DNA of 64,000 bases from Macrostomum lignano (GCA_002269645.1 NIVC01000558.1:248001-312000), one strand, 5' to 3'; positions 24,089 through 64,000 are shown, counted from the first letter of the stretch. Notes: generated from the letters alone by a model not told the origin. Program-made: numbers and translations.

Positions 24089-25210
24089 TTTTGCTTACCG
24101 ACAGTCACGGAAAGCAGCTTTCTTTTACATGAATGCCCTTGAACATGGTGAATAGAAAATAAGTAATTCTTTTCATGAATGGGTCTCCAAGGCTGCAAAA
24201 AATAACTTCGTTCCTCACTTGAAAGGATACGCGATTTCTGCACCGCAAGGCCGATATCTCTCACAGCAGATGCTGAATGACAGCTTGATGACAAAAGTAA
24301 GCATGTAGAAGTAGAACCCGCGGCTTGGTCACCAGCAGAATGGGCGCCGTCACCAGCAGAATGGGCGCCGTCACCAGCAGAATGGCCGCCATCACTGGCA
24401 GAATGGGCGCCATCACTGGCAGAATGGCCGCCATCACTGGCAGAATGGCCGCCATCACTGGCAGAATGGGCGCCGTCACTGGCAGAATGGCCGCCATCAC
24501 TGGCAGAATGGCGCTGAGCTCCCCGTCAACTTAGTAACGGCCAAGACCCGCTGATAAGGGAGGGGGTGCTGCATAGTTTTGTCAGCCGATTTGGGGGGGG
24601 GGGGGCGCGGCCCTCCTTGCCCCCCTCTGGCTACGCCCCTGATAAAACTCCATAGTGCTTTTAGGCATTGTGAAAGTTAAGGTTTATGAAAAGAGCTTGT
24701 GAAAGTTTGTGTCTTGCGACATTGTGAAATTTAGGGTTTGTGGAAGCGACCCCTTATATTCGTGCTTGGAATTGGTTACTAGTGTCAGTCTATTAAATTT
24801 AGTAGATAAGGCTAAAGTGGTACATGACAGTTAAGTATTAACAGTATATATATTGACAATTGTAAGACTCACATTTTAAACTATTTTTACATTCTCTGTA
24901 TAACATGTAGTTTAATGTAGTTTATCAGAGCCTAGTCCAGTTTATTAGGTCCGTTTTTCCAAACCTCTTTGCTGGGGTAATATTTGATACCTCTTGGCAA
25001 GCAACAGAAAAGTAAGAAAAGAAATTCTCAAGAAATTGTTCCACTGCTAAATGAGTGCCAACACCTGTGGCAGCAGGAGTTCTGCAGTGTGGTTGTGCTG
25101 GACACCGGACCGGACTGCGCGAGCGTGCTGGCCGGTGACCGAGCTCAACAGCTCAGCCTGGGCCGATGCGTTGTTGCCAAGCGTTGCCGGGCTGTTGCTG
25201 GGCGAATCCT

Positions 25211-31786: not shown

Positions 31787-34700
31787 TCAGGATGAGGCAC
31801 TCAGGAAGCTGTGCCGCAGCAGCTCCGCGGTGTCCGCTCGCTTCCTCGGGTCATAGTCTACGCACCTGAGGTAGAAGTCCTTCAGGCCGGCTGAGAACCC
31901 GTCCGCAATCCGAGGCATCTTCTGCTTTCTAAACCGCAGAATGCCAATATTTTCAATTGGCTGGTCTCCATCAGGAGGCTGCATGGCCGTCAGCTCATAC
32001 ACGGTGCAGCCGAAGGCCCACACGTCGGTCTTGGCTGAGTACAGAAGTGATTTCAATTTTGTGTCGAACAGCTCCGGAGCCATGAAGTACATGGTACCTT
32101 TTGGTCCGAAGCCTGTGCTAAGACCGCAGGTCTTCTCAATCTCCTTGGCCAGACCGAAGTCGATCAGCTTGATGACGCCCTCGTTGGTGAGCATAATATT
32201 GGAGCTCTTAATGTCACGGTGCAAGATAGCGCCCTCCGGCTGGCAGTGCAGAAAGTTCAGGCCTGAGCAGATCTGCAGGAGCAGTTTTGAGCAGTCATGA
32301 GACCCCATACCTGCTCCCACCCACACTGATCCCACACTAATCCCACACTGATCCCACACTGATCCCACACTGATCCCACACTGATCCCACACTGATCCCA
32401 CACTGATCCCACACTGATCCCACGCTGATCCCACACTGATCCCACACTAATCCCACATCCCACCCATGCCAGGCAATGCCAGAGAACTCAGAGACACACC
32501 TGTCTGGAGAAGTCCCTGACCCCGGACTCCTTGAACGGCTTTTTTTGACGCTGCATCAGCTCAAAGAGGCTGTGACCCGAGACCAGCTCGGTGAAGATGT
32601 ACAGCCCATCCGACTTCTGCTCGCACTTGAGGAACTGCAGGATGTTGGGATGCGAGAGTCGCTTGAGGATCTCAACTCCCCGCTTCTCCATCTCGACGGC
32701 TCTCTGCAGCTTCCCCGATTGGCCGGTGCCGCTCAGGGGCAGCACCTTGACAGCCACCGTCTGGTTGCGGTCTGTGAGGGCCTTGTACACCTTGCCGAAT
32801 CCACCACGGCCGATGAGCTGCTTCTTGTCGTCCTGCAGAATGAAGTCCCAGTCGGTGAAGCTGGGGTCCAGCTGCTTCTTGGCGCTGAAACATGAAATGA
32901 AGGAATTGATGAATTTTGTGTTGCTTGGGGCTTTCTGAGTACTTTGGAGTCACTCAGCCTTCTGCGTCACTACTCTTATGCGTCACCATCCTTATGCGTC
33001 ACCACCCTTCTGCGTCACCAGCCTTCTGCGTCAACCACCCTTCTGCGTCACCACCCTTCTGCGTCACCAACCTTCTGCGTCACCAGCCTTCTGCGTCACC
33101 ACCCTTCTGCGTCACCACCCTTCTGCGTCACCACCCTTCTGCGTCACCACCCTTCTGCGTCACCACCCTTCTGCGTCACCACCCTTCTGCGTCACCACCC
33201 TTCTGCGTCACCGCCCTTCTGCGTCACCACCCTTCTGCGTCACCACCCTTCTGCGTCACCGCCCTTCTGCGTCACCACCCTTCTGCGTCACCAGCCTTCT
33301 GCGTCACCAGCCTTCTGCGTCACCGCCCTTCTGCGTCACCACCCTTCTGCGTCACCACCCTTCTGCGTCACCACCCTTCTGCGTCACCACCCTTCTGCGT
33401 CACAACCCTTCTGCGTCACCACCCTTCTGCGTCACCACCCTTCTGCGTCACCACCCTTCTGCGTCACCACCCTTCTGTCATGAGCATCCTCGGGCGCCGT
33501 GAAGAGCCAGGTTCCTTTTGGCTGGTTGCCTGCGCTCAGACTGCAGGTTCTGATGAGTTCACTAACTGTCGCCTCATCATTTCTCACCGAGTCTTTTCAG
33601 GCAGTCCGACCGGAGTCGGCCCAGGCGGCTGGACGCTCTGTCGAGCTCGTGGGCGGGGACGCGGAGCTGCAGCGCTGTAGGAAGAGTTTTACGAGTGAGC
33701 CCGTTAAACATGTCTGGGTCGCCAACTCTGCTAATGCTTCGTGTATAAAAAGCCCTTGCAGATTGAGCTTTGGGTGGCGCTATATGGACATTGGGGGCGC
33801 GATCGGGAGATTGCGGCGCCACGAAGAGATTGGAGGCTCTCAAATCATTCAAGTGCCAATATTTTGAACATCACACCAAGTACATTCCTACTAAAATCGG
33901 AGAGTTTGAAACTTCGGAGAGTTTGATGGCACTTGCACTCGCTGATGCTTTGTGTTTAGAAACTGCAGATTGAGCTGTGGGTGGGGGTTGTGGGCCCATA
34001 GGGAGGTTGGAGGCGCCATGGGGAGATTGGAGACGCCGTTGGGAGGTTGGAGGCGCCATGAAGAGGTTTAAGGCGCCATGGGGAGGTTGGGGGCGCCATG
34101 GGGAGGTTGGAGGCGCCATGAGGAGGTTGGAGGCGCCATGGGGAGGTTGGGGGCGCCATGGGGAGGTTGGGGCACCATGGGGAGGTTGGAGGCGCCATGT
34201 AGAGGTTGGGGGCGCCATGAGGAGCTGTACTGACAGATTCATGACACCCTCGCTTGACTGCGGCGCTGCTGAGAATTTCAGGGCGCCGATCATCAAAGCA
34301 ATGAATTTCAATGAATTTTCGCCAAAAAACATTTTCAGAATTTTCAGTGTCAGGCAGCAGCTCTCAGTCAGGACTCACCCAGCTGAGGCGGCAGTCGGCG
34401 CTGAGCTGCCAGCGGGAGGCCGAGAGGCTTCGAGCTGCCGCTGCGTGGAGGAAATCCAGGCCCGCTTTGCTGACTCGTCTGTGAGGCACCGCCGACTCGC
34501 AACAACATCAGCCGGTGTTTCGCCCCTGTTGTTCTTCAAGCTGAGCATTTCGGCTCCGATTTGGTCAAAAATGAACTGAAGAGAGTCGACTGGCTGCCAC
34601 TGAGCGGCCAAATGGACGGCCGTGTTACCGTCTTTGCCAGGAACTGTGAGACAGTCGCTGCCGAGCTCCTTCACCAGCCACTTCAGATTTGAATTGTCAG

Positions 34701-36153
34701 ACTTCCCAGCAGCAATGTGAAATGCTGTTTTATCACATTCTCCCTTCAGCCGAAAGCAGTCAGTTCCGATCTGTCTCTTGATCCACTCCAGCGACTCGAT
34801 GCCCTGATACAGAGCGGCCAAATGGACGGCCGTGTCACCGTCTTTGTCAGGAACTGTGAGACAGTCGCTGCCGAGCTCCTTCACCAGCCACTTCAGATTT
34901 GAATTGTCAGACTTCTGAGCAGCAGAGTGAAATGCCGTTCTCTTCCAGAACCCTCCGTTTAGCCGAAAGCAGTCAGTTCCGATCTGTCTCTTGATCCACT
35001 CCAGCGACTCGATGCCCTGATGCTTAGCGGCCAAATGGATGGCCGTGTCACCGTCTTTGTCAGGAACTGTGAGACAGTCGCTGCCGAGCTCCTTCACCAG
35101 CCACTTCAGATTTGAATTGTCAGACTTCTTAGCAGCAATGTGAAATGCTGTTCTATCCCACCATCCCTTCAGCCGAAAGCAGTCAGTTCCGATCTGTCTC
35201 TTGATCCACTCCAGCGACTCGATGCCCTGATGCTCAGCGGCCAAATGGACGGCCGTGTCACCGAGTATGTCAGGAACTGTGAGACAGTCGCTGCCGAGCT
35301 CCTTCACCAGCCACTTCAGATTTGAATTGTCAGACTTCTCAGCAGCAAAGTGAAATGGTCTTCTATCACCATCTCCCTTCAGCCGAAAGCAGTCAGTTCC
35401 GATCTGTCTCTTGATCCACTCCAGCGACTCGATGCCCTGATGCTGAGCGGCCAAATGGACGGCCGTGTCACCGTCTTTGTCAGGAACTGTGAGACAGTCG
35501 CTGCCGAGCTCCTTCACCAGCCACTTCAGATTTGAATTGTCAGACTTCCCAGCAGCAATGTGAAATGCTGTTTTATCACATTTTCCCTTCAGCCGAAAGC
35601 AGTCAGTTCCGATCTGTCTCTTGATCCACTCCAGCGACTCGATGCCCTGATACAGAGCGGCCAAATGGACGGCCGTGTAACCGTCTTCGTCAGGAACTGT
35701 GAGACAGTCGCTGCCGAGCTCCTTCACCAGCCTCTTCAGACAAGAGTTGCTTTTTCTGTTCATAGCGGCAAAGTGAGCGACTGTCTGTTTCAATCTATCG
35801 ACAATTCTCAAGCAGCCTCTGCCTCCCTTCTCTTTAACCAGCTTCATCCAAGATTCGTCCTGATGCTGGGCAGCCAAGTGCACTGGAGTCTCGTCCCTAT
35901 CATTTCCAAGTGTCAGACAGTCGGGTCCGAATCTGTCAATCAGCAGCTCCAGGCACGACGAGCTCACCGGCTTGCAGGCCACGTGGTGGGCCAGCGGCAT
36001 TTTGCGAAGCTCTTCAAAGGGATAGTCTTGCTTGTCGAACCCGCCCACCTCCAGCTCGATGTTGCTGCCGACCTCACCGCACAGTCGCTGCAGCTGCTCG
36101 CTGTCTCCAGCCTCCAGCGCCGCTCTCAGCTTCCGCTCCATCTCCGTTGCCAT
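31787..36153 (-). CDS. Ankyrin-repeat / Ser-Thr protein kinase (STE/MAP3K-like), paralogue A, ~910 aa; exons 36153-34379, 33674-33588, 32884-32500, 32272-31787
   Basis: ATG in a gccATGg context with an in-frame stop upstream. GT-AG introns with matching phases (2, 2, 0); the total of 2733 nt equals 911 codons. Structure: N-cap, then 5 x 70-aa double-ankyrin units, then C-cap, a Pro/Arg linker exon and a kinase with [24 protein letters not shown] and DVWAFG intact. Confidence 0.9.
32315..34215. repeat. Intronic arrays of kinase gene A: 11-bp cccacactgat (32315-32455), 16-bp ttctgcgtcaccaccc (32955-33478), ~21-bp gggaggttggaggcgccatgg (33985-34215)
   Basis: Each intron carries its own array. 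Confidence 0.88.
34636..35688 (-). repeat. Coding 210-bp tandem repeat (two ankyrin repeats per unit), 5 units, paralogue A
   Basis: Unit consensus [70 protein letters not shown]; one unit is 71 aa. Confidence 0.95.
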
Positions 36154-38640: not shown

Positions 38641-39169
38641 GGCACCTCATCAATGGCGCTTTGTGCTCAAATGCAGTTTAGTTATATATTAGTTATTATA
38701 ATAATTTTGCATTTTGTACTCACGGTTTATTTTGCTAATCTTTATACACAGTTCAGGTGTGCATTTTGTAATCCAGCTTTGATAATCTTTGGATTTATTT
38801 ATCCGGTGCAACAGACTGACCCTGCTTCTACTCGCCCCGACCCTAGCCATCCAAGCAGCTCCAGACCAGCCGAGCTCAATGCCCAGAGGACAATGGCGAA
38901 GCTGAGGTTTAAGGGCCGAGCCGGCAGCCTGCGAACGCGTGTCAAAAGAAGGCTCGCTGCAAATGCTTTTTTAGGAGGGGGGAGGGGGTTGATGGCTGCC
39001 TAAAAGCGGCACAGAGACAAAATGCGTGAGCGCTAACCCTGACCCGCTCAGACAATTCACTGCTTTGCATTGCGCCTGTGCGCTCTCGGCTAAAATTTAC
39101 TACCTTTGATATTCGGCACTTCGGGTTTTCAGATGCGAGCCTCGCACTCATATTGGGCGTCTAGAATTA

Positions 39170-41915
39170 GGGTGAGGGGCAGGGAGGGAGACAGGCTGGG
39201 ATGTAGGGTGAGGAGCAGGGAGAGAGACAGGCTGGGATGTAGGGTGAGGGGCAGGGAGAGAAACAGGCTGGGATGTAGGGTGAGGAGCAGGGAGAGAGAC
39301 AGGCTGGGATGTAGGGTGAGGGGCAGGGAGAGAGACAGGCTGGGATGTAGGGTAAGGAGCAGGGAGAGAGACAGGCTGGGATGTAGGGTGAGGGGCAGGG
39401 AGAGAGACAGGCTGTGATGTAGGGTGAGGGGCAGGGAGAGAGACAGGCTGGGATGTAGGGTGAGGGGCAGGGAGAGAGACAGGCTGTGATGTAGGGTGAG
39501 GGGCAGTATGAGCGACAGGCTGGGATGTAGGGTGAGGGGCAGGGAGAGAGACAGGCTGGGATGTAGGGTGAGGGGCAGGGAGAGAGACAGGCTGGGATGT
39601 AGGGTGAGGGGCAGGGAGAGACAGGCTGGGATGTAGGGTGAGGGGCAGGGAGAGAGACAGGCTGTGATGTAGGGTGAGGGGCAGTATGAGCGACAGGCTG
39701 GGATGTAGGGTGAGGGGCAGAGAGGGAGACAGGCTGGGACGTAGGGTGAGGCGCGGGGAGATACAGGCTGGGATGTAGGGTGAGGGGCGGCGAGATACAG
39801 GCTGGGATCTAGGGTGAGGGGCAGGGAGAGAGACAGGCTAGGATGTAGGGTGAGGGGCAGGGAGAGAGACAGGCTGGGATGTAGGGTGAGGGGCAGGGAG
39901 AGACAGGCTGGGATGTAGGGTGAGGGGCAGGGAGAGAGACAGGCTGTGATGTAGGGTGAGGGGCAGTATGAGCGACAGGCTGGGATGTAGGGTGAGGGGC
40001 AGGGAGGGAGACAGGCTGGGATGTAGGGTGAGGCGCGGGGAGAGAAAGGCTGGGATGTAGGGTGAGGGGCGGGGAGATACAGGCTGGGATGTAGGGTGAG
40101 GGGCAGGGAGAGAGACCGGCTGGGATGTAGGGTGAGGGGCAGGGAGAGAGACAGGCTGGGATGCAGGGTGAGGGACAAGAAGAGATAGGCTGCGATGTAG
40201 GGTGAGGGGCAGGGAGGGAGACAGGCTGGGATGTAGGGTGAGGGGCAGGGAGAGAGACAGGCTGGGATGTAGGGTGAGGGGCAGGGAGAGAGACAGGCTG
40301 GGATGTAGGGTGAGGGGCAGGGAGGGAGAAAGGCTGGGATGTAAGGTGAGGGGCAGGGAGAGAGACAGGCTGGGATGTAGGGTGAGGGGCAGGGAGAGAG
40401 ACAGGCTAGGATGTAGGGTGAGGGGCAGGGAGAGAGACAGGCTGGGATGTAGGGTGAGGGGCGGGGAGATACAGGCTGGGATGTAGGGTGAGGGGCAGGG
40501 AGAGAGACAGGCTGTGATGTAGGGTGAGGGGCAGTATGAGCGACAGGCTGGGATGTAGGGTGAGGGGCAGGGAGGGAGACAGGCTGGGATGTAGGGTGAG
40601 GCGCGGGGAGATACAGGCTGGGATGTAGGGTGAGGGGCGGGGAGATACAGGCTGGGATGTAGGGTGAGGGGCAGGAAGAGAGACCGGCTGGGATGTAGGG
40701 TGAGGGGCAGGGAGAGAGACAGGCTGGGATGCAGGGTGAGGGACAAGAAGAGATAGGCTGGGATGCAGGGTGAGGGACAAGAAGAGATAGGCTGGGATGT
40801 AGGGTGAGGGGCAGGGAGGGAGACAGGCTGGGATGTAGGGTGAGGGGCAGGGAGAGAGACAGGCTGGGATGTAGGGTGAGGGGCAGGGAGAGAGACAGGC
40901 TGGGATGTAGGGTGAAGGGCAGGGAGAGAGACCGGCTGGGATGTAGGGTGAGGGGCAGGGAGAGAGACAGGCTGGGATGCAGGGTGAGGGACAAGAAGAG
41001 ATAGGCTGGGATGCAGGGTGAGGGACAAGAAGAGATAGGCTGGGATGTAGGGTGAGGGGCAGGGAGGGAGACAGGCTGGGATGTAGGGTGAGGGGCAGGG
41101 AGAGAGACAGGCTGGGATGTAGGGTGAGGGGCAGGGAGAGAGACAGGCTGGGATGTAGGGTGAGGGGCAGGGAGAGAGAAAGGCTGTGATGTAGGGTGAG
41201 GGGCAGTATGAGCGACAGGCTGGGATGTAGGGTGAGGGGCAGGGAGAGACAGGCTGGGATGTAGGGTGAGGCGCGGGGAGATACAGGCTGGGATGTAGGG
41301 TGAGGGGCGGGGAGATACAGGCTGGGATGTAGGGTGAGGGGCAGGGAGAGAGACAGGCTGGGATGTAGGGTGAGGGGCAGGGAGGGAGAAAGGCTGGGAT
41401 GTAGGGTGAGGGGCAGGGAGAGAGACAGGCTGGGATGTAGGGTGAGGGGCAGGGAGAGAGACAGGCTGGGATGTAGGGTGAGGGACAAGAAGAGATAGGC
41501 TGGGATGTAGGGTGAGAGGCAGGGAGGGAGACAGGCTGGGATGTAGGGTGAGAGGCAGGGAGAGAGACAGGCTGGGATGCAGGGTGAGGGACAAGAAGAG
41601 ATAGGCTGGGATGCAGGGTGAAGGACAAGAAGAGATAGGCTCGGATGTAGGGTGAGGGGCAGGGAGGGAGAAAGGCTGGGATGTAGGGTGAGGGGCAGGG
41701 AGAGAGACAGGCTGGGATGTAGGGTGAGGGGCAGGGAGAGAGACAGGCTGGGATGTAGGGTGAGGGGCAGGGAGAGAGACAGGCTGGGATGTAGGGTGAG
41801 GGACAAGAAGAGATAGGCTGGGATGTAGGGTGAGAGGCAGGGAGGGAGACAGGCTGGGATTTAGGGTGAGGGGCAGGGAGAGAGACAGGCTGGGATTTAG
41901 GGTGAGAGGCAGGGC
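39170..41915. repeat. 36-bp G-rich minisatellite (ggctgggatgtagggtgaggggcagggagagagaca)n, ~76 copies
   Basis: Directly visible; the long minus-strand ORFs (934, 596 and 466 aa) are artefacts of it. The same unit occurs at 50588-51303. Confidence 0.95.
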
Positions 41916-42306
41916 TGGCAAAATACCTTCCAAAATACCTCCGAAATCGCGAATAAAACAGCTGCCATCAATCCAATCACTTCATGACTTCATAACTTGC
42001 ATCATTTCTTGGCCCTCGTGGGTATATAGTCGTTCAGTTCAAAAATAGTTTTAAATCTCCGCAAACAATATCGCTTACAATACGCTACTCATAGTACTCA
42101 TAAGAATATCATTTGCCGTTAAAGAGAAGAACGGCTGCATGGAATTTTTCCAGAAATTCGTTTGCACCTGAAGATTCGCTATGCTGGAGTTTTTTACTCA
42201 AAAGGAATGACAAAACTCTTACACTGCCGTGAGTCGTGCCTCGGCTCTCGGGGGTGGGCGCTCAGTTTTGGAATTTTCCAGCGTCTCCGATGCACCTCAC
42301 TCTGCA

Positions 42307-42468
<162 letters not shown>

Positions 42469-43216
42469 CAGCTTGTGTTGTGTTGCGCACCTGTAAGAAT
42501 TCAATTTTATTGCACATTCGAGTCCGCCTCTCCATCGGTTTCATTGTCCCGCATTTGGCTTGTAAAAAACTGGCTTCTCAAGCAGCTGATTGCATTTTAT
42601 AACAAATGCTCGCTCAGCTCGAGTTTTGTTTAGCTGCGAGCTTGAGCAGTCCTGCTCACAGGGCTCTCTTCGCCAGCTACATGAGCACGCATATCAACTG
42701 ACAGAATTCAGCAATCCACCCTCGCTTTGGCCCACTGATGTTCCACACTTCTTTATATTTTTGCCTCCAAGAAGTCCAAAAGCAACAGCCAATCAGATTT
42801 TGCTTTCGATGCGCAGATTTTTAGTGGCGATAAAAGTGAAAATTGAATACTGATTTCTTATTTCGAAAACGTTGGACTAACCTTAGAAAATGAGAAACAG
42901 TCCATCACAGGCGCGTGTGGTTGGTGCTGACTCACACAGCCATCCTTCAGGTAGCTGACTGCTCACACAGCCAGTGCAATTACATGTACATTATTTATCC
43001 GGTGCAACACACTGACTCAGCAGTTCAGCATTAATAATCTAGTTTTTCACCTGCATTGCTCAAATAAAAGTATTGCTGTTTCAATGTTTCTGTCAGATCA
43101 CCAATGGATGACAATGCAGAGCAGCACATGTAAAGTATGTGCATTTGAGCATAAAGTTCTCGGCTGGTGTTTGTCTTTGCTATTTTGTTCGTGGTTTGGA
43201 ATCTCAGATTCGTGCT

Positions 43217-45830
43217 CATGTGCCATGACTAATATCTCATGCACACAGCCATTTCTCATGTGCAATGACCCATATCTCATGCACACAGCCATTGCTCATG
43301 TGCAATGACCCATATCTCATGCACACAGCCATTGCTCATGTGCCATGACCCATATCTCATGCACACAGCCATTGCTCATGTGCAATGACCCATATCTCAT
43401 GCACACAGCCATTGCTCATGTGCCATGACCCATATCTCATGCACACAGCCATTGCTCATGTGCCATGACCCATATCTCATGCACACAGCCATTGCTCATG
43501 TGCCATGACACATATCTCATGCACACAGCCATTGCTCATGTGCCATGACCCATATCTCATGCACACAGCCATTGCTCATGTGCCATAACTAATATCTCAT
43601 GCACACAGCCATTGCTCATGTGCTATGACTAATATCTCATGCACACAGCCATTGCTCATGTGCAATGACCCATATCTCATGCACACAGCCATTGCTCATG
43701 TGCAATGACCCATATCTCATGCATACAGCCATTGCTCATGTGCTATGACCCATATCTCATGCACACAGCCATTGCTCATGTGCAATGACCCATATCTCAT
43801 GCACACAGCCATTGCTCATGTGCCATGACCCATATCTCATGCACACAGCCATTGCTCATGTGCAATGACCCATATCTCATGCACACAGCCATTGCTCATG
43901 TGCAATGACACATATCTCATGCACACAGCCATTGCTCATGTGCAATGACCCATATCTCATGCACACAGCCATTGCTCATGTGCCATGACTAATATCTCAT
44001 GCACACAGCCATTGCTCATGTGCTATGACCCATATCTCATGCACACAGCCATTGCTCATGTGCAATGACCCATATCTCATGCACACAGCCATTGCTCATG
44101 TGCAATGACTAATATCTCATGCACACAGCCATTGCTCATGTGCTATGACCCATATCTCATGCACACAGCCATTGCTCATGTGCTATGACCCATATCTCAT
44201 GCACACAGCCATTGCTCATGTGCAATGACCCATATCTCATGCACACAGCCATTGCTCATGTGCCATGACCCATATCTCATGCACACAGCCATTGCTCATG
44301 TGCAATGACCCATATCTCATGCACACAGCCATTGCTCATGTGCCATGACCCATATCTCATGCACACAGCCATTGCTCATGTGCAATGATCCACATCTCAT
44401 GCACACAGCCATTGCTCATGTGCCATGACCCATATCTCATGCACACAGCCATTGCTCATGTGCAATGATCCACATCTCATGCACACAGCCATTGCTCATG
44501 TGCCATGACCCATATCTCATGCACACAGCCATTGCTCATGTGCTATGACCCATATCTCATGCACACAGCCATTGCTCATGTGCAATGACCCATATCTCAT
44601 GCACACAGCCATTGCTCATGTGCCATGACCCATATCTCATGCACACAGCCATTGCTCATGTGCAATGACCCATATCTCATGCACACAGCCATTGCTCATG
44701 TGCCATGACCCATATCTCATGCACACAGCCATTGCTCATGTGCCATGACCCATATCTCATGCACACAGCCATTGCTCATGTGCTATGACCCATATCTCAT
44801 GCACACAGCCATTGCTCATGTGCCATGACCCATATCTCATGCACACAGCCATTGCTCATGTGCTATGACCCATATCTCATGCACACAGCCATTGCTCATG
44901 TGCCATGACCCATATCTCATGCACACAGCCATTGCTCATGTGCCATAACTAATATCTCATGCACACAGCCATTGCTCATGTGCCATGACCCATATCTCAT
45001 GCACACAGCCATTGCTCATGTGCCATGACCCATATCTCATGCACACAGCCATTGCTCATGTGCTATGACCCATATCTCATGCACACAGCCATTGCTCATG
45101 TGCCATGACCCATATCTCATGCACACAGCCATTGCTCATGTGCCATGACCCATATCTCATGCACACAGCCATTGCTCATGTGCTATGACCCATATCTCAT
45201 GCACACAGCCATTGCTCATGTGCCATGACCCATATCTCATGCACACAGTCATTGCTCATGTGCCATGACCCATATCTCATGCACACAGCCATTGCTCATG
45301 TGCAATGATCCACATCTCATGCACACAGCCATTGCTCATGTGCCATAACTAATATCTCATGCACACAGCCATTGCTCATGTGCCATGACCCATATCTCAT
45401 GCACACAGCCATTGCTCATGTGCCATAACTAATATCTCATGCACACAGCCATTGCTCATGTGCAATGATCCACATCTCATGCACACAGCCATTGCTCATG
45501 TGCCATAACTAATATCTCATGCACACAGCCATTGCTCATGTGCCATAACTAATATCTCATGCACACAGCCATTGCTCATGTGCCATAACTAATATCTCAT
45601 GCACACAGCCATTGCTCATGTGCCATGACCCATATCTCATGCACACAGCCATTGCTCATGTGCCATGACCCATATCTCATGCACACAGCCATTGCTCATG
45701 TGCCATGACACATATCTCATGCACACAGCCATTGCTCATGTGCCATGACCCATATCTGATGCACACAGCCATTGCTCATGTGCCATGACCCATATCTCAT
45801 GCACACAGCCATTGCTCATGTGCCATGACC
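43217..45830. repeat. 40-bp minisatellite (catatctcatgcacacagccattgctcatgtgccatgacc)n, ~65 copies
   Basis: The 120-nt phase is visible across lines. Confidence 0.97.
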
Positions 45831-47240: not shown

Positions 47241-48975
47241 GGGCATATCAGTAGTCTTCACAAGATGCGTGGGCCCACAGGTAAGCAAATTCAGCAGGTA
47301 TCGAGTAGGCTGAGCAATGGCTGGAGTTGCGATCATGCGCTTCCGGCTGGTTGCAGTGATGAGCAATGGTACAGTAGAAAATATTTTAAACTCTGTTGCT
47401 TGCTCCATTTTCAGCAGGGCTTATTGATCCTCGCTGCTCTCCGTGCCTGCTTATCTACACAACCGAGCTTCAAACTCGGTGACCGCGTGCCTGCCCAGAG
47501 CTGAGCAAAACTATTTGAGCGGGAAAAGTGAGCAACAACTGCATCGGTCCCTGCACACCAGTGCCTCACCTCCAGTCAGCCGGGTTTGCCATCCCAACAG
47601 ACTGCACTCAAAACAGGGCGGCTCACACCTCAGGCCCGTGCACTGGTCCCTCCTACCGGGGTACCGGGTGCCTGTGCCGCCTACGGCCCCTCGGTCTCTC
47701 CTCCAGCCTTCTGTCACTAGCGGACACAAAAGTTGCAGCCAACAAGGGGGTCGCACCCACCTTCCTGCCGCTGCCGTGACGCGAACTTGAGTCGAGTTCC
47801 AACATTCGGATAGCAGAGTGGCGTTCCATGGTCGCCGCAGTGCTGCTCCGTCTGCCGCCTCCTCACCTCGAGGTGGCTTTTCCCAAGGGCGAACGGATTC
47901 CGCCCCCAAGAGCCGTGGTGTCGGGTTGCTGACGCCTGCGGGGGTACTCTCAAAGGGGTAGCCATGGTCTTACGCTTGACCAGCATGCTTGACTCCCCTA
48001 AGAGCTGGCATGCTTCGCCTTCTAAGGTGACTGTCTAACACTAGCAAGCAACTTTAATTAAGCAAACAGTTTTTAACTTTACTCTTTTTTGTTTATTTAC
48101 TGAATTTTTCTGAATAGAGCAGTTTTAATGCCATCAGTCGGTGCACATGGCTGGATTTGGTAGGCCTTTTTGCCTTAATTTTAGCGGACAGCACCTGGGA
48201 TCAAGTCAACAGGTCGTTTGCTGTGTCACATGACAAGGCTGATTCCTATAGCCGAGCCACAACGTCTCAAACATCTGGTTCTGTTGACGCCAGCACCCTA
48301 CTAGCCCTGCGTGATGCTGTCTAGTCCGCTCTCTCACACTGTATGACTGCCTCGCAGACATCGCAGTCCAGAGTTTTCATCGTGGACTCCGTCTGACGAG
48401 GCAACCAGACAGCGGTTGAAACTGACATCGCCTGCATGTGCACCGGTCTGTCTACATAAGTCAATATTTTACAATTTTTATTTAAACTAATGAATACAGT
48501 AATCGATAAATTTTACTGCAACTCAGCCTCTGCCGCATGTCATCCTCCAGCTCTTGTCTTTTGCCGCTCATGTCCTCTTGGTTGGAAAAACTGGTGTTTT
48601 CTAAGAAATGCTTGTCCAGACTCCGGAAAGTCAGGCAACCAGCATGTATAGGCGGTTTTCGTGGGTCGGAATGGGCGGTGATCGTTGCACCTCCTTTTAC
48701 TTTCAGTATGTGCAGACCAAGTCTTATAACTGCAATGGCTCCATTGTTCGGGCGCAAGTTGAAAGTTTCTCTTCTTTTCCGCGCTCATATTTGTGCTCAG
48801 TCGCATTATTCGAAACCTGCACAATAGCAAGAGGGTTAGAGAACTAAGCAATAGCAACTACTTGAGTGAAAAAATGAACGCCTGTACGCCAGTTCCACGT
48901 GAACACGGCTAGATCAGACCTGGCCGTTGTGCATCATCGTTGATGCTGCTGCTGATGGTTGTGTGAGTCGAGCTA

Positions 48976-51991: not shown

Positions 51992-54900
51992 ACTGAGTTG
52001 GTTAAACTGTGCTCAGTAAGCCTGAGTTGGTTAAACTGTGCTCAGTGAGCCTGAGTTGGTTAAACTGTGCTCAGTAAGCGTGAGTTGGTTAAACTGTGCT
52101 CAGTAAGCCTGAGTTGGTTAAACTGTGCTCAGTAAGCGTGAGTTGGTTAAACTGTGCTCAGTAAGCCTGAGTTGGTTAAACTGTGCTCAGTAAGCCTGAG
52201 TTGGTTAAACTGTGCTCAGTAAGCCTGAGTTGGTTAAACTGTGCTCAGTAAGCCTGAGTTGGTTAAACTGTGCTCAGTAAGCGTGAGTTGGTTAAACTGT
52301 GCTCACAGGTTGTAATTCTGAGTTGGTATCGATTTTTAATCAGAATGGAATCTGGAGACTGTGCAGCATGTGAGGCGATTCTGCGAATATGAGATCATGA
52401 GGTCCATGTTTATTGTTTATTTACTTGGATGCCTTTGATTAATTTATAACAAATCGTTCGTTTAGCATTTAGGCATTGATTTAGGTCATAGACAATTGCG
52501 GTCATACCCAGTAGGTCATAGACAATTGCGGTCATGCTCAGTAGGTCATAGACAATTGCGGTCATACCCAGTAGGTCATAGACAATTGCGGTCATGCTCA
52601 GTAGGTCATAGACAATTGCGGTCCTACCCAGTAGGTCATAGACAATTGCGGTCATGCTCAGTAGGTCATAGACAATTGGGTCATGCTCAGTAGGTCATAG
52701 ACAATTGCGGTCATGCTCAGTAGGTCATAGACAATTGCGGTCATACCCAGTAGGTCATAGGCAATTGCGGTCATGCTCAATAGGTCATAGACAATTGCGG
52801 TCATGCTCAGTAGGTCATAGACAATTGCGGTCATACCCAGTAGGTCATAGACAATTGCGGTCATGCTCAGTAGGTCATAGACAATTGGGTCATGCTCAGT
52901 AGGTCATAGACAATTGCGGTCATGCTCAGTAGGTCATAGCCAATTGCGGTCATACCCAGTAGGTCATAGGCAATTGCGGTCATGCTCAATAGGTCATAGA
53001 CAATTGCGGTCATGCTCAGTAGGTCATAGACAATTGCGGTCATACCCAGTAGGTCATAGACAATTGCGGTCATGCTCAGTAGGTCATAGACAATTGCGGT
53101 CATACCCAGTAGGTCATAGACAATTGCGGTCATGCTCAGTAGGTCATAGACAATTGCGGTCATACCCAGTAGGTCATAGACAATTGCGGTCATGCTCAGT
53201 AGGTCATAGACAATTGGGTCATGCTCAGTAGGTCATAGACAATTGCGGTCATGCTCAGTAGGTCATAGACAATTGCGGTCATACCCAGTAGGTCATAGGC
53301 AATTGCGGTCATGCTCAATAGGTCATAGACAATTGCGGTCATGCTCAGTAGGTCATAGACAATTGCGGTCATACCCAGTAGGTCATAGACAATTGCGGTC
53401 ATGCTCAGTAGGTCATAGACAATTGGGTCATGCTCAATAGGTCATAGACAATTGCGGTCATGCTCAGTAGGTCATAGACAATTGCGGTCATGCTCAGTAG
53501 GTCATAGACAATTGCGGTCATACCCAGTAGGTCATAGACAATTGCGGTCATGCTCAGTAGGTCATAGACAATTGCGGTCATGCTCAGTAGGTCATAGACA
53601 ATTGCGGTCATACCCAGTAGGTCATAGGCAATTGCGGTCATGCTCAGTAGGTCATAGACAATTGCGGTCATGCTCAGTAGGTCATAGACAATTGCGGTCA
53701 TACCCAGTAGGTCATAGACAATTGCGGTCATACCCAGTAGGTCATAGACAATTGCGGTCATACCCAGTAGGTCATAGACAATTGCGGTCATGCTCAGTAG
53801 GTCATAGACAATTGCGGTCATACCCAGTAGGTCATAGGCAATTGCGGTCATGCTCAGTAGGTCATAGACAATTGCGGTCATGCTCAGTAGGTCATAGACA
53901 ATTGCGGTCATACCCAGTAGGTCATAGGCAATTGCGGTCATGCTCAGTAGGTCATAGACAATTGCGGTCATGCTCAGTAGGTCATAGACAATTGCGGTCA
54001 TACTCAGTAGGCCATAGACAATTGGGTCATGCTCAATAGGTCATAGACAATTGGGTCATGCTCAGTAGGTCATAGACAATTGGGTCATGCTCAGTAGGTC
54101 ATAGACAATTGGGTCATGCTCAGTAGGTCATAGACAATTGGGTCATGCTCAGTAGGTCATAGACAATTGGGTCATGCTCAGTAGGTCATAGACAATTGCG
54201 GTCATGCTCAGTAGGTCATAGACAATTGCGGTCATACCCAGTAGGTCATAGACAATTGCGGTCATGCTCAGTAGGTCATAGACAATTGCGGTCATACTCA
54301 GTAGGTCATAGACAATTGCGGTCATGCTCAGTAGGTCATAGACAATTGCGGTCATACCCAGTAGGTCATAGACAATTGCGGTCATGCTCAGTAGGTCATA
54401 GGCAATTGCGGTCATGCTCAGTAGATCATAGACAATTGCGGTCATGCTCAGTAGATCATAGACAATTGCGGTCATGCTCAGTAGGTCATAGGCAATTGCG
54501 GTCATGCTCAGTAGGTCATAGACAATTGCGGTCATGCTCAGTAGGTCATAGACAATTGCGGTCATGCTCAGTAGGTCATAGACAATTGCGGTCATGCACA
54601 GTAGGTCATAGACAATTGCGGTCATGCTCAGTAGGTCATAGACAATTGCGGTCATGCTCAGTGGGTCATAGACAATTAGGGTCATACTCAGTACATGTAG
54701 ATCATAGACAATCATGATCACAACTCGTACATGTAGGGTAGCTGTGAAGAATCGGTCATAAACAGTAAATGAATTCAACGATCAAAATTAACAATAGCAT
54801 GAAACCTACGACCCCCTTTTACCTTCTATTCTACGCCCTTTCCCCTGATCTTACCCTCACCACAATCTCACCCGAGTTTCACCAGAATCTCACAAAGATG

Positions 54901-57814: not shown

Positions 57815-60800
57815 TCACGATGAGGCACTCAGGAAGCTGTGCCGCAGCAGCTCCGCGGTGTCCGCTCGCTTCCTCGGGTCATAGTCTACGCACCTGAGGT
57901 AGAAGTCCTTCAGGCCGGCTGAGAACCCGTCCGCAATCCGAGGCATCGCCCGCCCTCCGCACCTCAGCACGGCGATCCGGAAGTGCTGAACGTTCGCGTC
58001 AGGAGGCTGCATGGCCGTCAGCTCATACACGGTGCAGCCGAAGGCCCACACGTCGGTCTTGGCTGAGTACGGAATCGAATCGCCCTCGCCCATGAACAGC
58101 TCGGGCGCCATGAAGTAGGGGGTGCCTTTGGGATCAACGCCTGTGCTCAGGCCGCAGGTGCCGACAATCTCCTTGGCGAGGCCGAAGTCGATCAGCTTGA
58201 TGACGCCCTCGTTGGTGAGCATCACATTGGAGCTCTTGATGTCACGGTGCAAAATGGCGCCCTCCGGCTGGCAGTGCAGGAAGTTCAGGCCTGAGCAGAT
58301 CTGCAGGTCGAGCAGTTTTGGGTACTCAAAAAGTGCATGAATTCATTTTAAATCCCACCCTGATGCCACACTGATCCCACACTGACCCCACACTGATACC
58401 ACACTGATCTCACACTGATCCCACACTGATCCCACACTGATCCCACACTGATCCCACAATGATCCCACACTGATCCCACACTGATCCCACACTGATCCCA
58501 CAATGATCCCACACTGATCCCACACTGATCCCACACTGATCCCACACTAATCCCACACTGATTCCACCCTGATTCCACCCTGATCCCACCCTTACCAGAA
58601 AATTAATATGCCAGAGAACTCAGAGACGCACCTGTCTGGAGAAGTCCCTGACCCCGGACTCCTTGAACGGCTTGTTCTGACGCTGCATCAGCTCAAAGAG
58701 GCTGTGACCCGAGACCAGCTCGGTGAAGATGTACAGCCCGTCCGACTTCTGCTCGCACTTGAGGAACTGCAGAATGTTGGGATGCGAGAGTCGCTTGAGG
58801 ATCTCAACTCCCCGCTTCTCCATCTCGACGGCTTTCTGCAGCTTCCTCGATTGGCCGGTGCCGCTCAGGGGCAGCACCTTGACAGCCACCGTCTGGTTGC
58901 GGTCTGTGAGGGCCTTGTACACCTCACCGAATCCGCCACGGCCGATGAGCTGCTTCTTGTTGTCCTGCAGGATGAAGTCCCAGTCGGTAAAGCTGGGGTC
59001 CAGCTGCTTCTTGGCGCTGAAACATGAAATGAAGGAATTGATGAATTTTGTGTTGCTTGGAGCTTTCTGAGTACTTTGGAGTCACTCAGCCTTCTGCGTC
59101 ACCACCCTTCTGCGTCACCACCCTTCTGCGTCACCACCCTTCTGCGTCACCACCCTTCTGCGTCACCACCCTTCTGCGTCAACACCCTTCTGCGTCACCA
59201 GCCTTCTGCGTCACCAGCCTTCTGCGTCACCAGCCTTCTGCGTCACCAGCCTTCTGCGTCACCAGCCTTCTGCGTCACCAGCCTTCTGCGTCACCAGCCT
59301 TCTGCGTCACCAGCCTTCTGCGTCACTAGCCTTCTGCGTCACCAGCCTTCTGCGTCACCAGCCTTCTGCGTCACCAGCCTTCTGCGTCACCACCCTTCTG
59401 CGTCACCACCCTTCTGCGTCACCAGCCTTCTGCGTCACCACCCTTCTGCGTCACCATCCCTCTGCCATGAGCATCCTCGGGCGCCGTGAAGAGCCAGGTG
59501 CCTTTTGGCTGGTTGCCTGCGCTCAGACTGCAGGTTCTGATGAGTTCACTAACTGTCGCCTCATCATTTCTCACCGTGTCTCCTCAGGCAGTCCGACCGG
59601 AGTCGGCCCAGGCGGCTGGACGCTCTGTCGAGCTCGTGGGCGGGGACGCGGAGCTGCAGCGCTGTAGGAAGAGTTTTACGAGTGAGCCGTTAAACATGTC
59701 TGGGTCGCCAAGGCGGCACTTGAACTCTGCTAATGCTTCGTGTATAAGAAGCCCTGCAGATTGGGCTTTGGTGGCGCTATATGGACATTGGGGATGCGAT
59801 CGGGAGATTGCGGCGCCACGAAGAGATTTTGAACATATTATATTTAACATATTACATATTACAACATATTACATATTATATTATATTTTGAACATCACAC
59901 CAAGTACATTCCTACTAAAATCGGAGAGTTTGAAACTTCGGAGAGTTTGATGGCACTTGAACTCGCTGATGCTTTGTGTTAAAAAACTCCTGCAGATTGA
60001 GCTGTGGGTGGGGGTTGTGGGCCCATGGGGAGGTTGGAGGCACCATGGGGAGGTTAGAGGCGCCATGGGGAGGTTGGAGGCGCCATGGGGAGATTGGAGA
60101 CGCCATTGGGAGGTTGGAGGCGCCAAAGGGAGATTGGAGACACCATGGGGAGATTGGAGACGCCATTGGGAGGTTGGAGGCGCCACAGTAAGATTGGAGG
60201 CGCCATGGGGAGATTAGGGGCGCCATGAGGAGCTGCGCTGACAGATTCATGCCGCCATCGCTTGGCTGCGGCGCTGCTGAGAATATCAGGGCGCAGATCA
60301 TCAAAGCGCAATGAATTTTCTACAATGAATATTCTCAGTATTTTCACCTTCAGGCAGCAGTTCTCAGTCAGGACTCACCCAGATGAGGCGGCAGTCGGCG
60401 CTGAGCTGCCAGCGGGAGGCCGAGAGGCTTTGAGCCGCAGATGCGTGGAGGAAATCCAGGCCCGCTTTGCTGACTTGTCTGCGTCCCGCCGCGGACTCTC
60501 AACAACATCAGCCAGTGTTTTCCCCATGATGTTCTTCAAGCTGAACATTTCGGCTCCGATTTGGTTAAAAATGAACTGAAGAGAGCCGACTGGCTGATGC
60601 TGAGCGGCCAAATGGACGGCCGTGTCACCGCCTTCGTCAGGAACTGTGAGACAGTCGCTGCCGAGCTCCTTCACCAGCCACTTCAGATTTGAATTGTCAG
60701 ACTTCTCAGCAGCAAAGTGAAATGCCGTTTTATCCAACCATCCCTTCAGCCGAAAGCAGTCAGTTCCGATCTGTCCCTTGATCCACTCCAGCGACTCGAT

Positions 60801-63800
60801 GCCCTGATGCTGAGCGGCCAAATGGACGGCCGTGTCACCTCTAGAGTCAGGAACTGTGAGACAGTCGCTGCCGAGCTCCTTCACCAGCCACTTCAGATTT
60901 GAATTGTCAGACTTCCGAGCAGCAATGTGAAATGCCGTTTTATCCAACCATCTCTTCAGCCGAAAGCAGTCAGCTCCGATCTGTCTCTTGATCCACTCCA
61001 GCGACTCGATGCCCTGATGCTCAGCGGCCAAATGGACGGCCGTGTCACCGAGTATGTCAGGAACTGTGAGACAGTCGCTGCCGAGCTCCTTCACCAGCCA
61101 CTTCAGATTTGAATTGTCAGACTTCTCAGCAGCAATGTGAAATGCTGTTCTATCATCATCTCTCTTCAGCCGAAAGCAGTCAGTTCCGATCTGTCTCTTG
61201 ATCCACTCCAGCGACTCGATGCCCTGATGCTGAGCGGCCAAATGGACGGCCGTGGTACCGTATTTGTCAGGAACTGTGAGACAGTCGCTGCCGAGCTCCT
61301 TCACCAGCCACTTCAGCTTTGAATGGTCAGACTTCTTAGCAGCAATGTGAAATGCTGTTCTCTCACCATCTCCCTTCAGCTGAAAGCAGTCAGTTCCGAT
61401 CTGTCCCTTGATCCACTCCAGCGACTCGATGCCCTGATGCTGAGCGGCCAAATGGACGGCCGTGTCACCTCTAGAGTCAGGAACTGTGAGACAGTCGCTG
61501 CCGAGCTCCTTCACCAGCCACTTCAGCATTGAATTGTCAGACTTCTCAGCAGCAAAGTGAAATGCTGTTCTATCCCAGCATCCTCCCTTCAGCCGAAAGC
61601 AGTCAGTTCCGATCTGTCTCTTGATCGACTCCAGCGACTCGATGCCCTGATGCTGAGCGGCCAAATGGACGGCCGTGGTACCGTATTTGTCAGGAACTGT
61701 GAGACAGTCGCTGCCGAGCTCCTTCACCAGCCACTTCAGATTTGAATTGTCAGACTTCTCAGCAGCAATGTGAAATGCTGTTTTATCCCACCGTCCCTTC
61801 AGCCGAAAGCAGTCAGTTCCGATCTGTCCCTTGATCCACTCCAGCGACTCGATGCCCTGATGCTGAGCCGCCAAATGGACGGCCGTGTCACCGACTTTGT
61901 CAGGAACTGTGAGACAGTCGCTGCCGAGCTCCTTCACCAGCCACTTCAGATTTGAATTGTCAGACTTCTTAGCAGCAAAGTGAAATGCTGTTCTATCATC
62001 ATCTCCCTTCAGCTGAAAGCAGTCAGTTCCGATCTGTCCCTTGATCCACTCCAGCGACTCGATGCCCTGATGCTGAGCGGCCAAATGGACGGCCGTGTCA
62101 CCTCTAGAGTCAGGAACTGTGAGACAGTCGCTGCCGAGCTCCTTCACCAGCCACTTCAGATTTGAATTGTCAGACTTCTCAGCAGCAATGTGAAATGCTG
62201 TTCTATCCAACAATCCCTTCAGCCGAAAGCAGTCAGTTCCGATCTGTCTCTTGATCCACTCCAGCGACTCGATGCCCTGAAGCCAAGCAGCCAAATGGAC
62301 GGCCGTGTAACCGTCTTTGTCAGGAACTGTGAGACAGTCGCTGCCGAGCTCCTTCACCAGCCACTTCAGATTTGAATTGTCAGACTTCTCAGCAGCAAAG
62401 TGAAATGCCGTTTTATCCAACCATCCCTTCAGCCGAAAGCAGTCAGCTCCGATCTGTCTCTTGATCCACTCCAGCGACTCGATGCCCTGATGCTCAGCGG
62501 CCAAATGGACGGCCGTGTCACCGAGTATGTCAGGAACTGTGAGACAGTCGCTGCCGAGCTCCTTCACCAGCCACTTCAGATTTGAATTGTCAGACTTCTT
62601 AGCAGCAAAGTGAAATGCTGTTCTATCCAATAATCCCTTCAGCCGAAAGCAGTCAGTTCCGATCTGTCCCTTGATCCACTCCAGCGACTCGATGCCCTGA
62701 TGCTGAGCGGCCAAATGGACGGCCGTGGTACCGTATTTGTCAGGAACTGTGAGACAGTCGCTGCCGAGCTCCTTCACCAGCCACTTCAGATTTGAATTGT
62801 CAGACTTCTTAGCAGCAAAGTGAAATGCTGTTCTATCATCATCTCCCTTCAGCTGAAAGCAGTCAGTTCCGATCTGTCCCTTGATCCACTCCAGCGACTC
62901 GATGCCCTGATGCTGAGCGGCCAAATGGACGGCCGTGTCACCTCTAGAGTCAGGAACTGTGAGACAGTCGCTGCCGAGCTCCTTCACCAGCCACTTCAGA
63001 TTTGAATTGTCAGACTTCTTAGCAGCAAAGTGAAATGCTGTTCTATCATCATCTCCCTTCAGCCGAAAGCAGTCAGTTCCGATCTGTCTCTTGATCCACT
63101 CCAGCGACTCGATGCCCTGATGCTCAGCGGCCAAATGGACGGCCGTGTTACCGCATTTGTCAGGAACTGTGAGACAGTCGCTGCCGAGCTCCTTCACCAG
63201 CCACTTCAGATTTGAATTGTCAGACTTCCGAGCAGCAAAGTGAAATGCCGTTCTCTTCCAGAACCCTCCGTTCAGCCGAAAGCAGTCAGTTCCGATCTGT
63301 CTCTTGATCCACTCCAGCGACTCGATGCCCTGATGCTGAGCGGCCAAATGGACGGCCGTGTCACCGACTTTGTCAGGAACTGTGAGACAGTCGCTGCCGA
63401 GCTCCTTCACCAGCCTCTTCAGACAAGAGTTGCTTTTTCTGTTCATAGCGGCAAAGTGAGCGACTGTCTGTTTCAATCTATCGACAATTCTCAAGCAGCC
63501 TCTGCCTCCCTTCTCTTTAACCAGCTTCATCCAAGATTCGTCCTGATGCTGGGCAGCCAAGTGCACTGGAGTCTCGTCCCTATCATTTCCAAGTGTCAGA
63601 CAGTCGGGTCCGAATCTGTCAATCAGCAGCTCCAGGCACGACGAGCTCACCGGCTTGCAGGCCACGTGGTGGGCCAGCGGCATTTTGCGAAGCTCTTCAA
63701 AGGGATAGTCTTGCTTGTCGAACCCGCCCACCTCCAGCTCGATGTTGCTGCCGACCTCACCGCACAGTCGCTGCAGCTGCTCGCTGTCTCCAGCCTCCAG

Positions 63801-63836
63801 CGCCGCTCTCAGCTTCCGCTCCATCTCCGTTGCCAT
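57815..63836 (-). CDS. Ankyrin-repeat / Ser-Thr protein kinase (STE/MAP3K-like), paralogue B, ~1471 aa; exons 63836-60379, 59661-59575, 59016-58632, 58300-57815
   Basis: Same splice sites and phases as paralogue A; 4416 nt equals 1472 codons. 13 double-ankyrin units. Kinase motifs [30 protein letters not shown] and DVWAFG are intact. Confidence 0.9.
60636..63371 (-). repeat. Coding 210-bp tandem repeat (two ankyrin repeats per unit), 13 units, paralogue B
   Basis: Near-identical units with hypervariable codon patches; two units are 71 aa. Confidence 0.95.
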
Positions 63837-64000
63837 GGCTACACGGCTTCTCCTAGCAGCGCTTCTCTGCCGATCTGCTGTCTGCCGCAGCTGTTCCACA
63901 CGGCTTCAAACTGAGTGCTTTGCTCTTCTTCAAGCGAATTCGCCTGCCAGCTCAGCAGCAGCAGCAAAAGTCCCGCTGTCACGGACTGAAATCTCTGAGC

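Follow-up and report, generated by a model that had tools for sequence, protein, structure and literature searches.

The window analysed here is a stretch of 64,000 nucleotides from the flatworm Macrostomum lignano (GCA_002269645.1, NIVC01000558.1:248001-312000), and positions are counted from its first letter. It carries two related genes on the minus strand, gene A and gene B (the latter annotated as BOX15_Mlig011736g1), in which ankyrin (ANK) repeats are joined to a MAP3K-like kinase domain. Gene B has a large ANK exon encoding ~30 ankyrin repeats as one long solenoid, followed by the kinase. The nucleotide differences that survive between its near-identical tandem units are overwhelmingly non-synonymous and fall at groove-lining residues, at the beta-hairpin tips and in the first helix of the repeats. 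We read this pattern as the outcome of diversifying selection that acts, in an ANK-MAP3K gene, on the binding face of the ankyrin repeats, and we give that reading a probability of about 0.75.

Architecture and relatives of the ANK-kinase genes

The ankyrin part of gene B lies in an uninterrupted open reading frame (ORF) of 1174 codons (60375..63899, minus strand) that Pfam identifies as ankyrin throughout (Ank_2 E=1.9e-97, Ank_4 E=2.1e-96). The start ATG precedes the first repeat pair by 76 codons, and GT-AG junctions with canonical donors and acceptors join the ANK exon in frame to the kinase exons (Table 1). The same ANK-linker-kinase architecture occurs in annotated M. lignano proteins (P0001-P0016, ANK plus Pkinase). 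A prokaryotic or phage source for the window was considered and rejected, given its spliceosomal introns, Ty3/gypsy element and minisatellites and its 100% identity to the M. lignano contig NIVC01000558.1. Significant ANK profiles, a TPLH-like motif and a paired-helix solenoid in an AlphaFold2 (AF2) model place the exon in the ANK superfamily. That model was built for the ANK exon of gene A from a 22-sequence family alignment and reached pLDDT 92.4 and pTM 0.82; a single-sequence run gave pLDDT 49 and was discarded. The top Foldseek matches were ankyrin-1, NOMPC, the 24-repeat AnkB structure, DARPins and Espin1-AR (TM 0.79), with ankyrin-1, AnkB and DARPins at probability 1.00. Neither a signal peptide nor a hydrophobic segment was noticed in the sequence, and the protein is likely to be cytoplasmic.

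Table 1. Features of genes A and B, in window coordinates
Feature	Position	Strand	Basis and remarks
Gene B (BOX15_Mlig011736g1), ANK-repeat and MAP3K-like kinase gene, ATG to stop	57815..63836	-	L001 gene 10001-16022 = window 63836-57815, 100% identity; junctions from sequence and annotated protein P0001
Gene B exon 1, uninterrupted ANK-repeat exon, ~1152 codons from ATG, donor GG/GTGAGT at end	60379..63836	-	ORF; Pfam Ank_2 E=2e-97; donor and ATG from sequence
N-terminal family-specific region: N-cap helices and first ANK-like repeat	63609..63836	-	Helices and strands in AF2 model
Degenerate first double unit	63396..63608	-	Variation at hairpin positions among 7 paralogues
Array of 13 near-identical double units, 210/213 bp each (26 ANK repeats of 35 aa)	60660..63395	-	Hypervariable codons 9, 10, 12, 20 (a) and 45-48, 53, 56 (b)
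Last a-type repeat, C-terminal capping repeat and tail, hypervariable among paralogues	60379..60659	-	Whole-segment omega 2.47, 7 genes; gene A vs gene B Nd 26.3, Sd 1.75
87-nt in-frame cassette exon, flanks cag/ and /gtgaga	59575..59661	-	Present in P0001, P0003, P0121; skipped in P0002, P0008
Kinase exon 1: G-loop GRGGFG, VAVK lysine, alpha-C Glu	58632..59016	-	Acceptor tttcag/C, donor CAG/GTGCGT; tblastn; Pfam Pkinase
Kinase exon 2 and stop codon	57815..58300	-	Pfam Pkinase E=8e-28; nearest PDB entries STK25, SLK, MAP3K5
Gene A, tandem paralogue, 5 double units	31787..36153	-	Exons 36153-34379 (ANK), 33674-33588, 32884-32500, 32272-31787

The kinase has a complete set of catalytic motifs, APE included. 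Its best PDB matches are STE20-type kinases (STK25, SLK) and MAP3K5 at ~1e-36, and the best named matches outside Macrostomum are MEKK/STE11 kinases at 33-37% identity. On these motifs and best matches we class it provisionally as a STE11/MAP3K-like Ser/Thr kinase that is apparently active. Pfam scans of the ORF and the Pfam lists of the family proteins gave Ank and Pkinase only, with no NACHT or NB-ARC domain; without a nucleotide-binding oligomerization domain (NOD), the flatworm genes are therefore not NLRs.

Gene A lies in a duplicated region: the segment at ~28.0-36.2 kb is a tandem duplicate of ~52.0-63.9 kb, in a segmental duplication of ~26 kb. Both copies hold the same ordered minisatellites (29-, 30-, 20-, 25-, 21-, 11-, 16- and 20-bp), with differing copy numbers, and one ANK-MAP3K gene each. 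The introns of gene B consist mostly of microsatellite or minisatellite arrays with 11-, 16- and 20-bp units (58352-58589, 59081-59465, 60023-60232), and gene A has the same arrays, differing in copy number, at equivalent places (32320-32457, 32949-33477, 33996-34224). The first 510 coding nucleotides of the two genes are identical. Their second kinase exons (31790-32272 in gene A, 57818-58300 in gene B) share only 83% protein identity, and that of gene A is identical in protein to the corresponding exon of P0016 on another contig (L006 13821-14303). Such mosaic paralogues suggest exchange between family members.

The M. lignano annotation contains at least 23 such ANK+kinase proteins, and many kinase-only fragments exist as well. 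Other subfamilies (P0006, P0009, P0020) have ordinary divergent repeats. A search with the N-terminal 147 aa against 1.84 billion representative proteins returned 20 matches below 1e-30, all from M. lignano except for one generic ANK protein from a bacterial metagenome-assembled genome (MAG), which makes the family lineage-specific as far as these data go. The exception, P0024 (Kangiellaceae, 1537 aa, on a contig of 5106 bp), matches the array at E=4e-67 and the N-terminal part at 4e-39, with 33-34% identity; either it is a bacterial ANK protein or the MAG may be contaminated with eukaryotic sequence. In the literature on Macrostomum ankyrins, the Macrostomum kinome and metazoan repeats of the HiC (highly internally conserved) class we found no description of an ANK-MAP3K family.

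Distribution of variation in the repeat array

Tandem Repeats Finder reports a 210-bp period with 13.4 copies and 92% matches at 60594-63423. Cut at a repeat boundary, the array yields 13 complete double units, of which two measure 71 aa and the others 70 aa (Table 1). Each double unit consists of an a repeat (D-x-x-G-x-TAVHLAA-x-x-Q) and a b repeat (KG-x-x-D-x-TAFH-x-AA-x), both of 35 aa. Mean pairwise identity among the 13 is 93.1% for nucleotides and 87.8% for amino acids over 910 aa; the proteins are less alike than the DNA. The first-pass annotation of this DNA counted 18 units, which agrees with the 13 and 5 double units of the gene B and gene A arrays taken together (36 single ANK repeats) but not with the interval it gave, which covers gene B only.

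Within gene B, 51 of the 70 columns are invariant at the amino acid level and 49 at the codon level. The variable codons are 9, 10, 12 and 20 in the a repeat, with 21 weakly so, and 45, 46, 47, 48, 53 and 56 in the b repeat, and they often differ by two or three nucleotides. Codon 11 (Gly) separates hypervariable codons 10 and 12, yet all three of its positions are the same in each of the 13 units. When 36 double units from 7 genes were pooled (genes A and B and five paralogues, L002-L006, on four other contigs), the entropy profile peaked as in gene B alone; codon 11 remained nearly invariant at all three positions, with rare variants only. The residues that the first-pass annotation had listed at the variable sites are all real, but not all belong to the gene B array: ED, LY, KH, WW, EC and the KC of the b repeat come from the gene A array (34.6-35.7 kb), and EG and QW from the C-terminal cap repeats. 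A paratope-like enrichment in W, Y, R and D had also been proposed. At the hypervariable sites D (19%) and W (6%) are prominent, whereas Y (4%) and R (7%) are not, and the composition resembles that of a paratope only in part.

Register to the canonical repeat was set by equating TAVH/TAFH with TPLH and by Pfam Ank profile coordinates (residues 777-802 = profile positions 3-27). In Pfam numbering the entropy peaks fall at positions 33, 1, 3 and 11 in both repeat types, with 2 and 8 in addition in b. The corresponding DARPin positions are 2, 3, 5 and 13 in both and 4 and 10 in addition in b. Compared with what we take to be the randomised positions of DARPins, the proposed coincidence holds for 2, 3, 5 and 13. 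It fails for 14 and 33, which are not hypervariable (position 14 is H, rarely L or Y, in a, and an invariant K in b), and positions 4 and 10 of b are variable though they lie outside the DARPin library.

The concave, substrate-binding surface of ANK repeats comprises Pfam positions 1, 2, 3, 8, 11, 12, 32 and 33 (Utgés et al., Table 1; PMC8415598). All ten of the highest-entropy columns lie among the 16 concave-face columns (hypergeometric P=2e-8); these make up 23% of the columns and account for 72% of the entropy. A concave column has a mean entropy of 1.26, compared with 0.17 in the core and 0.14 in the remaining convex and basal columns; positions away from the groove are nearly fixed, as had been claimed. 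In the AF2 model, DSSP assigns the variable residues to three places: the loop leading into helix 1, the helix itself and the C-terminal end of that helix. Register, published position classes and DSSP together place the variable sites on the concave face, where the first-pass annotation expected them.

A second subfamily (P0017; L007 ~6430-7911 on contig NIVC01000934.1), ~48% identical, has its own near-identical 70-aa double units. In its array the b repeat varies at positions 33, 1, 3, 8 and 11, most of all at helix-1 position 8 (C/W/K/R/H/F), and the a repeat shows weaker variation at positions 1, 3 and 12. This array is an independent replicate of the pattern. Across the paralogues of genes A and B the number of double units ranges from 2 to 13. 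The 36 pooled units comprise 22 a-types and 28 b-types, and types common to several genes are re-paired; part of the diversity comes from shuffling rather than from new mutation.

Two other kinds of signal from the array were set aside. The Pfam matches to Cmr2_N, BiPBP_C, ParB-CE, Exop_C and YutD-like are artefacts in which many sub-threshold matches are summed and no stretch passes alone, and regular 61-aa ORFs on the plus strand are antisense by-products of the periodicity.

Selection and its alternatives

For estimates of selection, ten DARPin-type codons were defined a priori (positions 2, 3, 5, 13 and 14 of a and of b), and the other 60 codons were treated as framework. Nei-Gojobori values over all unit pairs, uncorrected for recombination, were dN=0.51 and dS=0.22 at the a-priori codons (dN/dS, omega, of 2.3) and dN=0.032 and dS=0.034 in the framework. 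The ratio of hypervariable dN to framework dS is 15, with a bootstrap range over units of 11-21. Minimum-change counts within gene B gave 30.7 non-synonymous changes over 25.4 sites against 3 synonymous changes over 42.1 framework sites, a ratio of 17 (P=1e-10). Both a dN/dS above 1 and less variation at synonymous than at non-synonymous sites had been anticipated in the earlier annotation.

The N- and C-terminal segments are homologous by position among the 7 genes and are unaffected by unit shuffling. Omega is 1.27 for the N-terminal segment and 2.47 for the C-terminal segment, and the changes again fall at hairpin and helix-1-end positions; for the kinase domain of the same genes omega is 0.39. 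Between genes A and B the C-cap carries 26.3 non-synonymous and 1.75 synonymous differences (pN 12.4%, pS 2.5%). Their noncoding sequence is 98.35% identical over 1.8 kb upstream and 92.5-97% identical in the introns and 3' flank, a divergence of 1.6-7%. Within gene B, units 3-5 (62343-62972; SR, KY and IL types) recur as units 10-12 (60870-61499). The two blocks differ at 14 codons, none of them synonymously, and one difference, a six-nucleotide swap of TTA TTG to GAT GAT, looks like a short cassette exchange.

The case for selection is made by contrast with three references: the silent sites of the framework, the noncoding flanks and the kinase domain. Diversity persists at exactly the hypervariable codons against a homogenising background, which calls for selection whether the differences were brought in by shuffling or by new mutation. 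Thus the location of the variable sites and the dN/dS values support the earlier proposal of diversifying selection on a putative ligand-binding surface.

Several points weigh against this reading. Multi-nucleotide differences such as the TTA TTG to GAT GAT swap may be single cassette exchanges, which inflates dN at the hypervariable codons. Within those codons, the split of synonymous to non-synonymous changes on a minimum spanning tree does not by itself differ from the neutral expectation. Framework omega is ~1 at 3% divergence, and purifying selection on the scaffold is deduced only from the family-wide consensus. Because units are non-independent through duplication and conversion, pooled-unit P-values are optimistic, and the concave-face assignment comes from sequence register, published position classes and DSSP rather than from measured 3D coordinates. 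The transcript-derived public model of gene B holds only 4 units, compared with 13 in the genomic array. Finally, a further step to an immune or non-self role, with ligand-regulated activation of the kinase, would be taken by analogy.

The array could instead be a structural or mechanical solenoid (a spring, spacer or scaffold), a role that has been proposed for NOMPC and ankyrins. Its variable residues would then adjust how the protein associates with itself or with a single conserved endogenous partner, and would not serve the recognition of diverse ligands. Its best sequence and fold matches include the long solenoids of NOMPC, TRPA1 and ankyrin-1/B, and its repeat number is large. We nevertheless consider this explanation unlikely, given that it predicts purifying selection in the groove, as on the concave faces of human ANK repeats (PMC8415598), and does not predict omega above 1, a range of 2-13 units or shuffled cassettes.

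We hold an assembly or annotation artefact, in which reads from paralogues or haplotypes of a polyploid, repeat-rich genome were stitched into a 13-unit array, to be improbable as well. The public model of gene B (P0001, 835 aa), with 4 of the 13 double units, also includes a KY-N-EH unit that is missing from the genomic copy; M. lignano has many close paralogues, and one assembly was examined. P0001 is probably a collapsed transcript assembly. The frame stays open for 1174 codons with an exact 210/213-bp periodicity, and the same architecture and variable positions are found at 7 loci on 5 contigs. Even mis-joined units would represent real family variation at the same codons; the conclusion on selection would hold, and only the unit count and order would change.

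Relaxed constraint, under which exposed residues drift on a scaffold held by purifying selection with no selection for diversity, is compatible with the changes within the hypervariable codons, where 5 synonymous and 50 non-synonymous changes come near the 15:85 ratio of sites. The variable sites are, moreover, surface loop and helix-end positions, the least conserved in ankyrin repeats generally (PMC8415598). What makes this explanation highly unlikely is that neutral sites cannot outpace silent and noncoding ones, and here dN at the a-priori codons far exceeds framework dS and the flank divergence given above. Concerted homogenisation would also have reached neutral codons, and codon 11 stays nearly invariant between 10 and 12.

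Targeted hypermutation without selection (retro-mutagenesis like that of a diversity-generating retroelement, deaminase hotspots or error-prone repair of the minisatellite-like array) could account for multi-nucleotide changes within single and adjacent codons, in a genome very rich in minisatellites and a window with a reverse transcriptase ORF (19981-23754), but it is the least credible of these explanations: the variable positions are set by codon and structure rather than by sequence context, with intervening codons and their third positions untouched; the same structural positions vary in the L007 subfamily, whose nucleotide sequence is different; majority bases at the variable columns (A 14, G 15, C 5, T 7) have no adenine bias; and the only reverse transcriptase belongs to a Ty3/gypsy element 40 kb away, with many units in the array and no template/variable repeat pair, on which grounds a retroelement target was rejected.

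Known systems, proposed function and the rest of the window

The closest known case is that of the fungal NLRs with HiC repeats. ANK, TPR and WD repeats of this class in fungal NLRs, among them the Podospora HNWD/NLR genes, vary in repeat number, evolve in concert and are under positive selection at a small number of positions on the concave face (PMC4986451; Paoletti 2007, PMC1805685). As in those genes, the flatworm repeats are tandem and at least 85% identical, are reshuffled within and between paralogues, and have their selected positions on the inner helix and the beta-hairpin. HiC repeats are defined by at least 85% identity over at least 100 aa, a length that the 910 aa of the gene B array far exceeds at its 87.8% identity. 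Variation in repeat number, with exchange among paralogues, is seen in the range of 2-13 units, the shared and re-paired cassettes and the mosaic genes, and diversifying selection on the concave face in the ratio of 15, the omega of 2.3 and the C-cap omega of 2.47. The flatworm genes differ in lacking both a NACHT or NB-ARC domain and an N-terminal death or effector domain; their effector would be the C-terminal MAP3K-like kinase. They also differ in belonging to an animal and in using a 70-aa pair of two distinct ANK subtypes as the unit. Near-identical ankyrin arrays are rare in animals, and HiC repeats were found in only 0.8% of metazoan ANK/TPR/WD proteins (Dyrka et al. 2014, PMC4986451).

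DARPins resemble the flatworm arrays in design. Both have a constant consensus-like scaffold with N- and C-terminal capping repeats, and in both the residues that vary include 2, 3 and 5 in the beta-turn and 13 in helix 1. The DARPin module of the Binz/Plückthun consensus is a designed 33-aa repeat, DxxGxTPLHLAAxxGHLEIVEVLLKxGADVNA, with synthetic N and C caps. The flatworm repeats, by contrast, are 35 aa long with the consensus TAVHLAA/TAFHFAA, number up to ~30 instead of 4-5, and lie in a natural, intron-containing gene fused to a kinase. They are not DARPins, the phmmer matches to DARPins and NI3C reaching only E 1e-6 to 1e-10. DARPin libraries randomise 6 positions per repeat (PMC6590788).

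Other recognition systems combine concerted evolution of repeats with diversifying selection: fungal NLRs and, on other folds, the LRRs of plant NLRs, lamprey VLRs, PRDM9 and TALEs. PRDM9 zinc fingers and TAL-effector repeats are near-identical tandem coding repeats with hypervariable contact residues, and their specificity codes are known. Like the flatworm genes, they are minisatellite-like coding arrays of variable copy number in which framework and silent sites are homogenised and contact residues differ; unlike them, they have other folds and bind DNA. Somatic assembly of the lamprey VLR type, in which flanking donor cassettes are copied into an incomplete germline gene, was rejected, the germline ORFs being complete at 7 of 7 loci (on 5 contigs of one assembly).

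An ankyrin domain and a protein kinase also share one polypeptide in ILK, TNNI3K, RIPK4/ANKK1, DAPK1 and the Giardia ANK-Nek kinases. The Giardia ANK-Nek family has reportedly undergone a lineage-specific expansion. In the flatworm the kinase is STE11/MAP3K-like, and not of the TKL, RIPK, CAMK or Nek type. To our knowledge, near-identical repeats with hypervariable groove residues have not been reported in any of these families.

Under diversifying selection, the history of the arrays might have been as follows. Unequal crossing-over and short-patch conversion would copy and shuffle units and keep the framework and silent sites homogeneous, and selection for new binding specificities would retain new or different residues at contact positions. 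In this way the germline would come to hold many binding surfaces built on one unchanging scaffold, much as a DARPin library does by design. The variable groove may bind fast-changing ligands, most likely non-self or selfish-element proteins; the candidates include proteins of pathogens, symbionts or selfish elements and a rapidly evolving endogenous partner. Ligand binding might then regulate the attached MAP3K and so feed a MAPK stress or immune cascade.

A sensor or immune function, suggested by analogy, is a tentative proposal that we consider doubtful at present. More speculative still is the idea that the ANK-MAP3K genes are an unrecognised class of animal intracellular sensors of non-self or pathogens, with DARPin-like grooves diversified by duplication and shuffling and wired to a MAP3K rather than a NOD, and would thus be a metazoan, kinase-coupled counterpart of the fungal HiC-repeat NLRs. 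A bolder version, in which the minisatellite-like arrays also rearrange somatically, finds no support here.

If the proposal is true, a regenerating flatworm model would possess lineage-specific natural DARPin-like binders coupled to a MAP3K, and the genes would be candidates for immune or surveillance receptors of a new architecture within Lophotrochozoa, a group in which little is known of innate recognition. They would also constitute a natural experiment on the ANK positions that evolution has randomised, namely 2, 3, 5 and 13, plus 4 and 10, and not 14 or 33. M. lignano is amenable to RNA interference and transgenesis, so the idea is directly testable. Public gene models collapse or omit the arrays, with 4 of 13 units kept for gene B and none for gene A, whose model (P0121) starts in the C-cap and lacks the ANK array; the family is consequently largely hidden from annotation-based surveys.

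Elsewhere in the window, downstream of gene B, a gene whose Pfam match is to Hormone_5 (neurophysin-type) starts at ~47815-47986 on the minus strand according to the public annotation (from L001 25851-26022). The reverse transcriptase ORF mentioned above is an uninterrupted Ty3/gypsy-type pol frame of 1257 aa on the plus strand, with aspartyl protease, reverse transcriptase, RNase H and integrase, and may belong to a recently active retrotransposon. Dozens of minisatellites are spread over the window, among them arrays at 39168-41914 (36 bp x77), 43213-45830 (40 bp x65), 25208-26954 (56 bp x31), 8281-9549 (22 bp x58) and 52482-54693 (30 bp x74). The large minisatellites yield long spurious ORFs, such as one of 934 aa at 39129-41933 with no Pfam match, and GC skew reaches 0.69 in the 36 bp x77 array.

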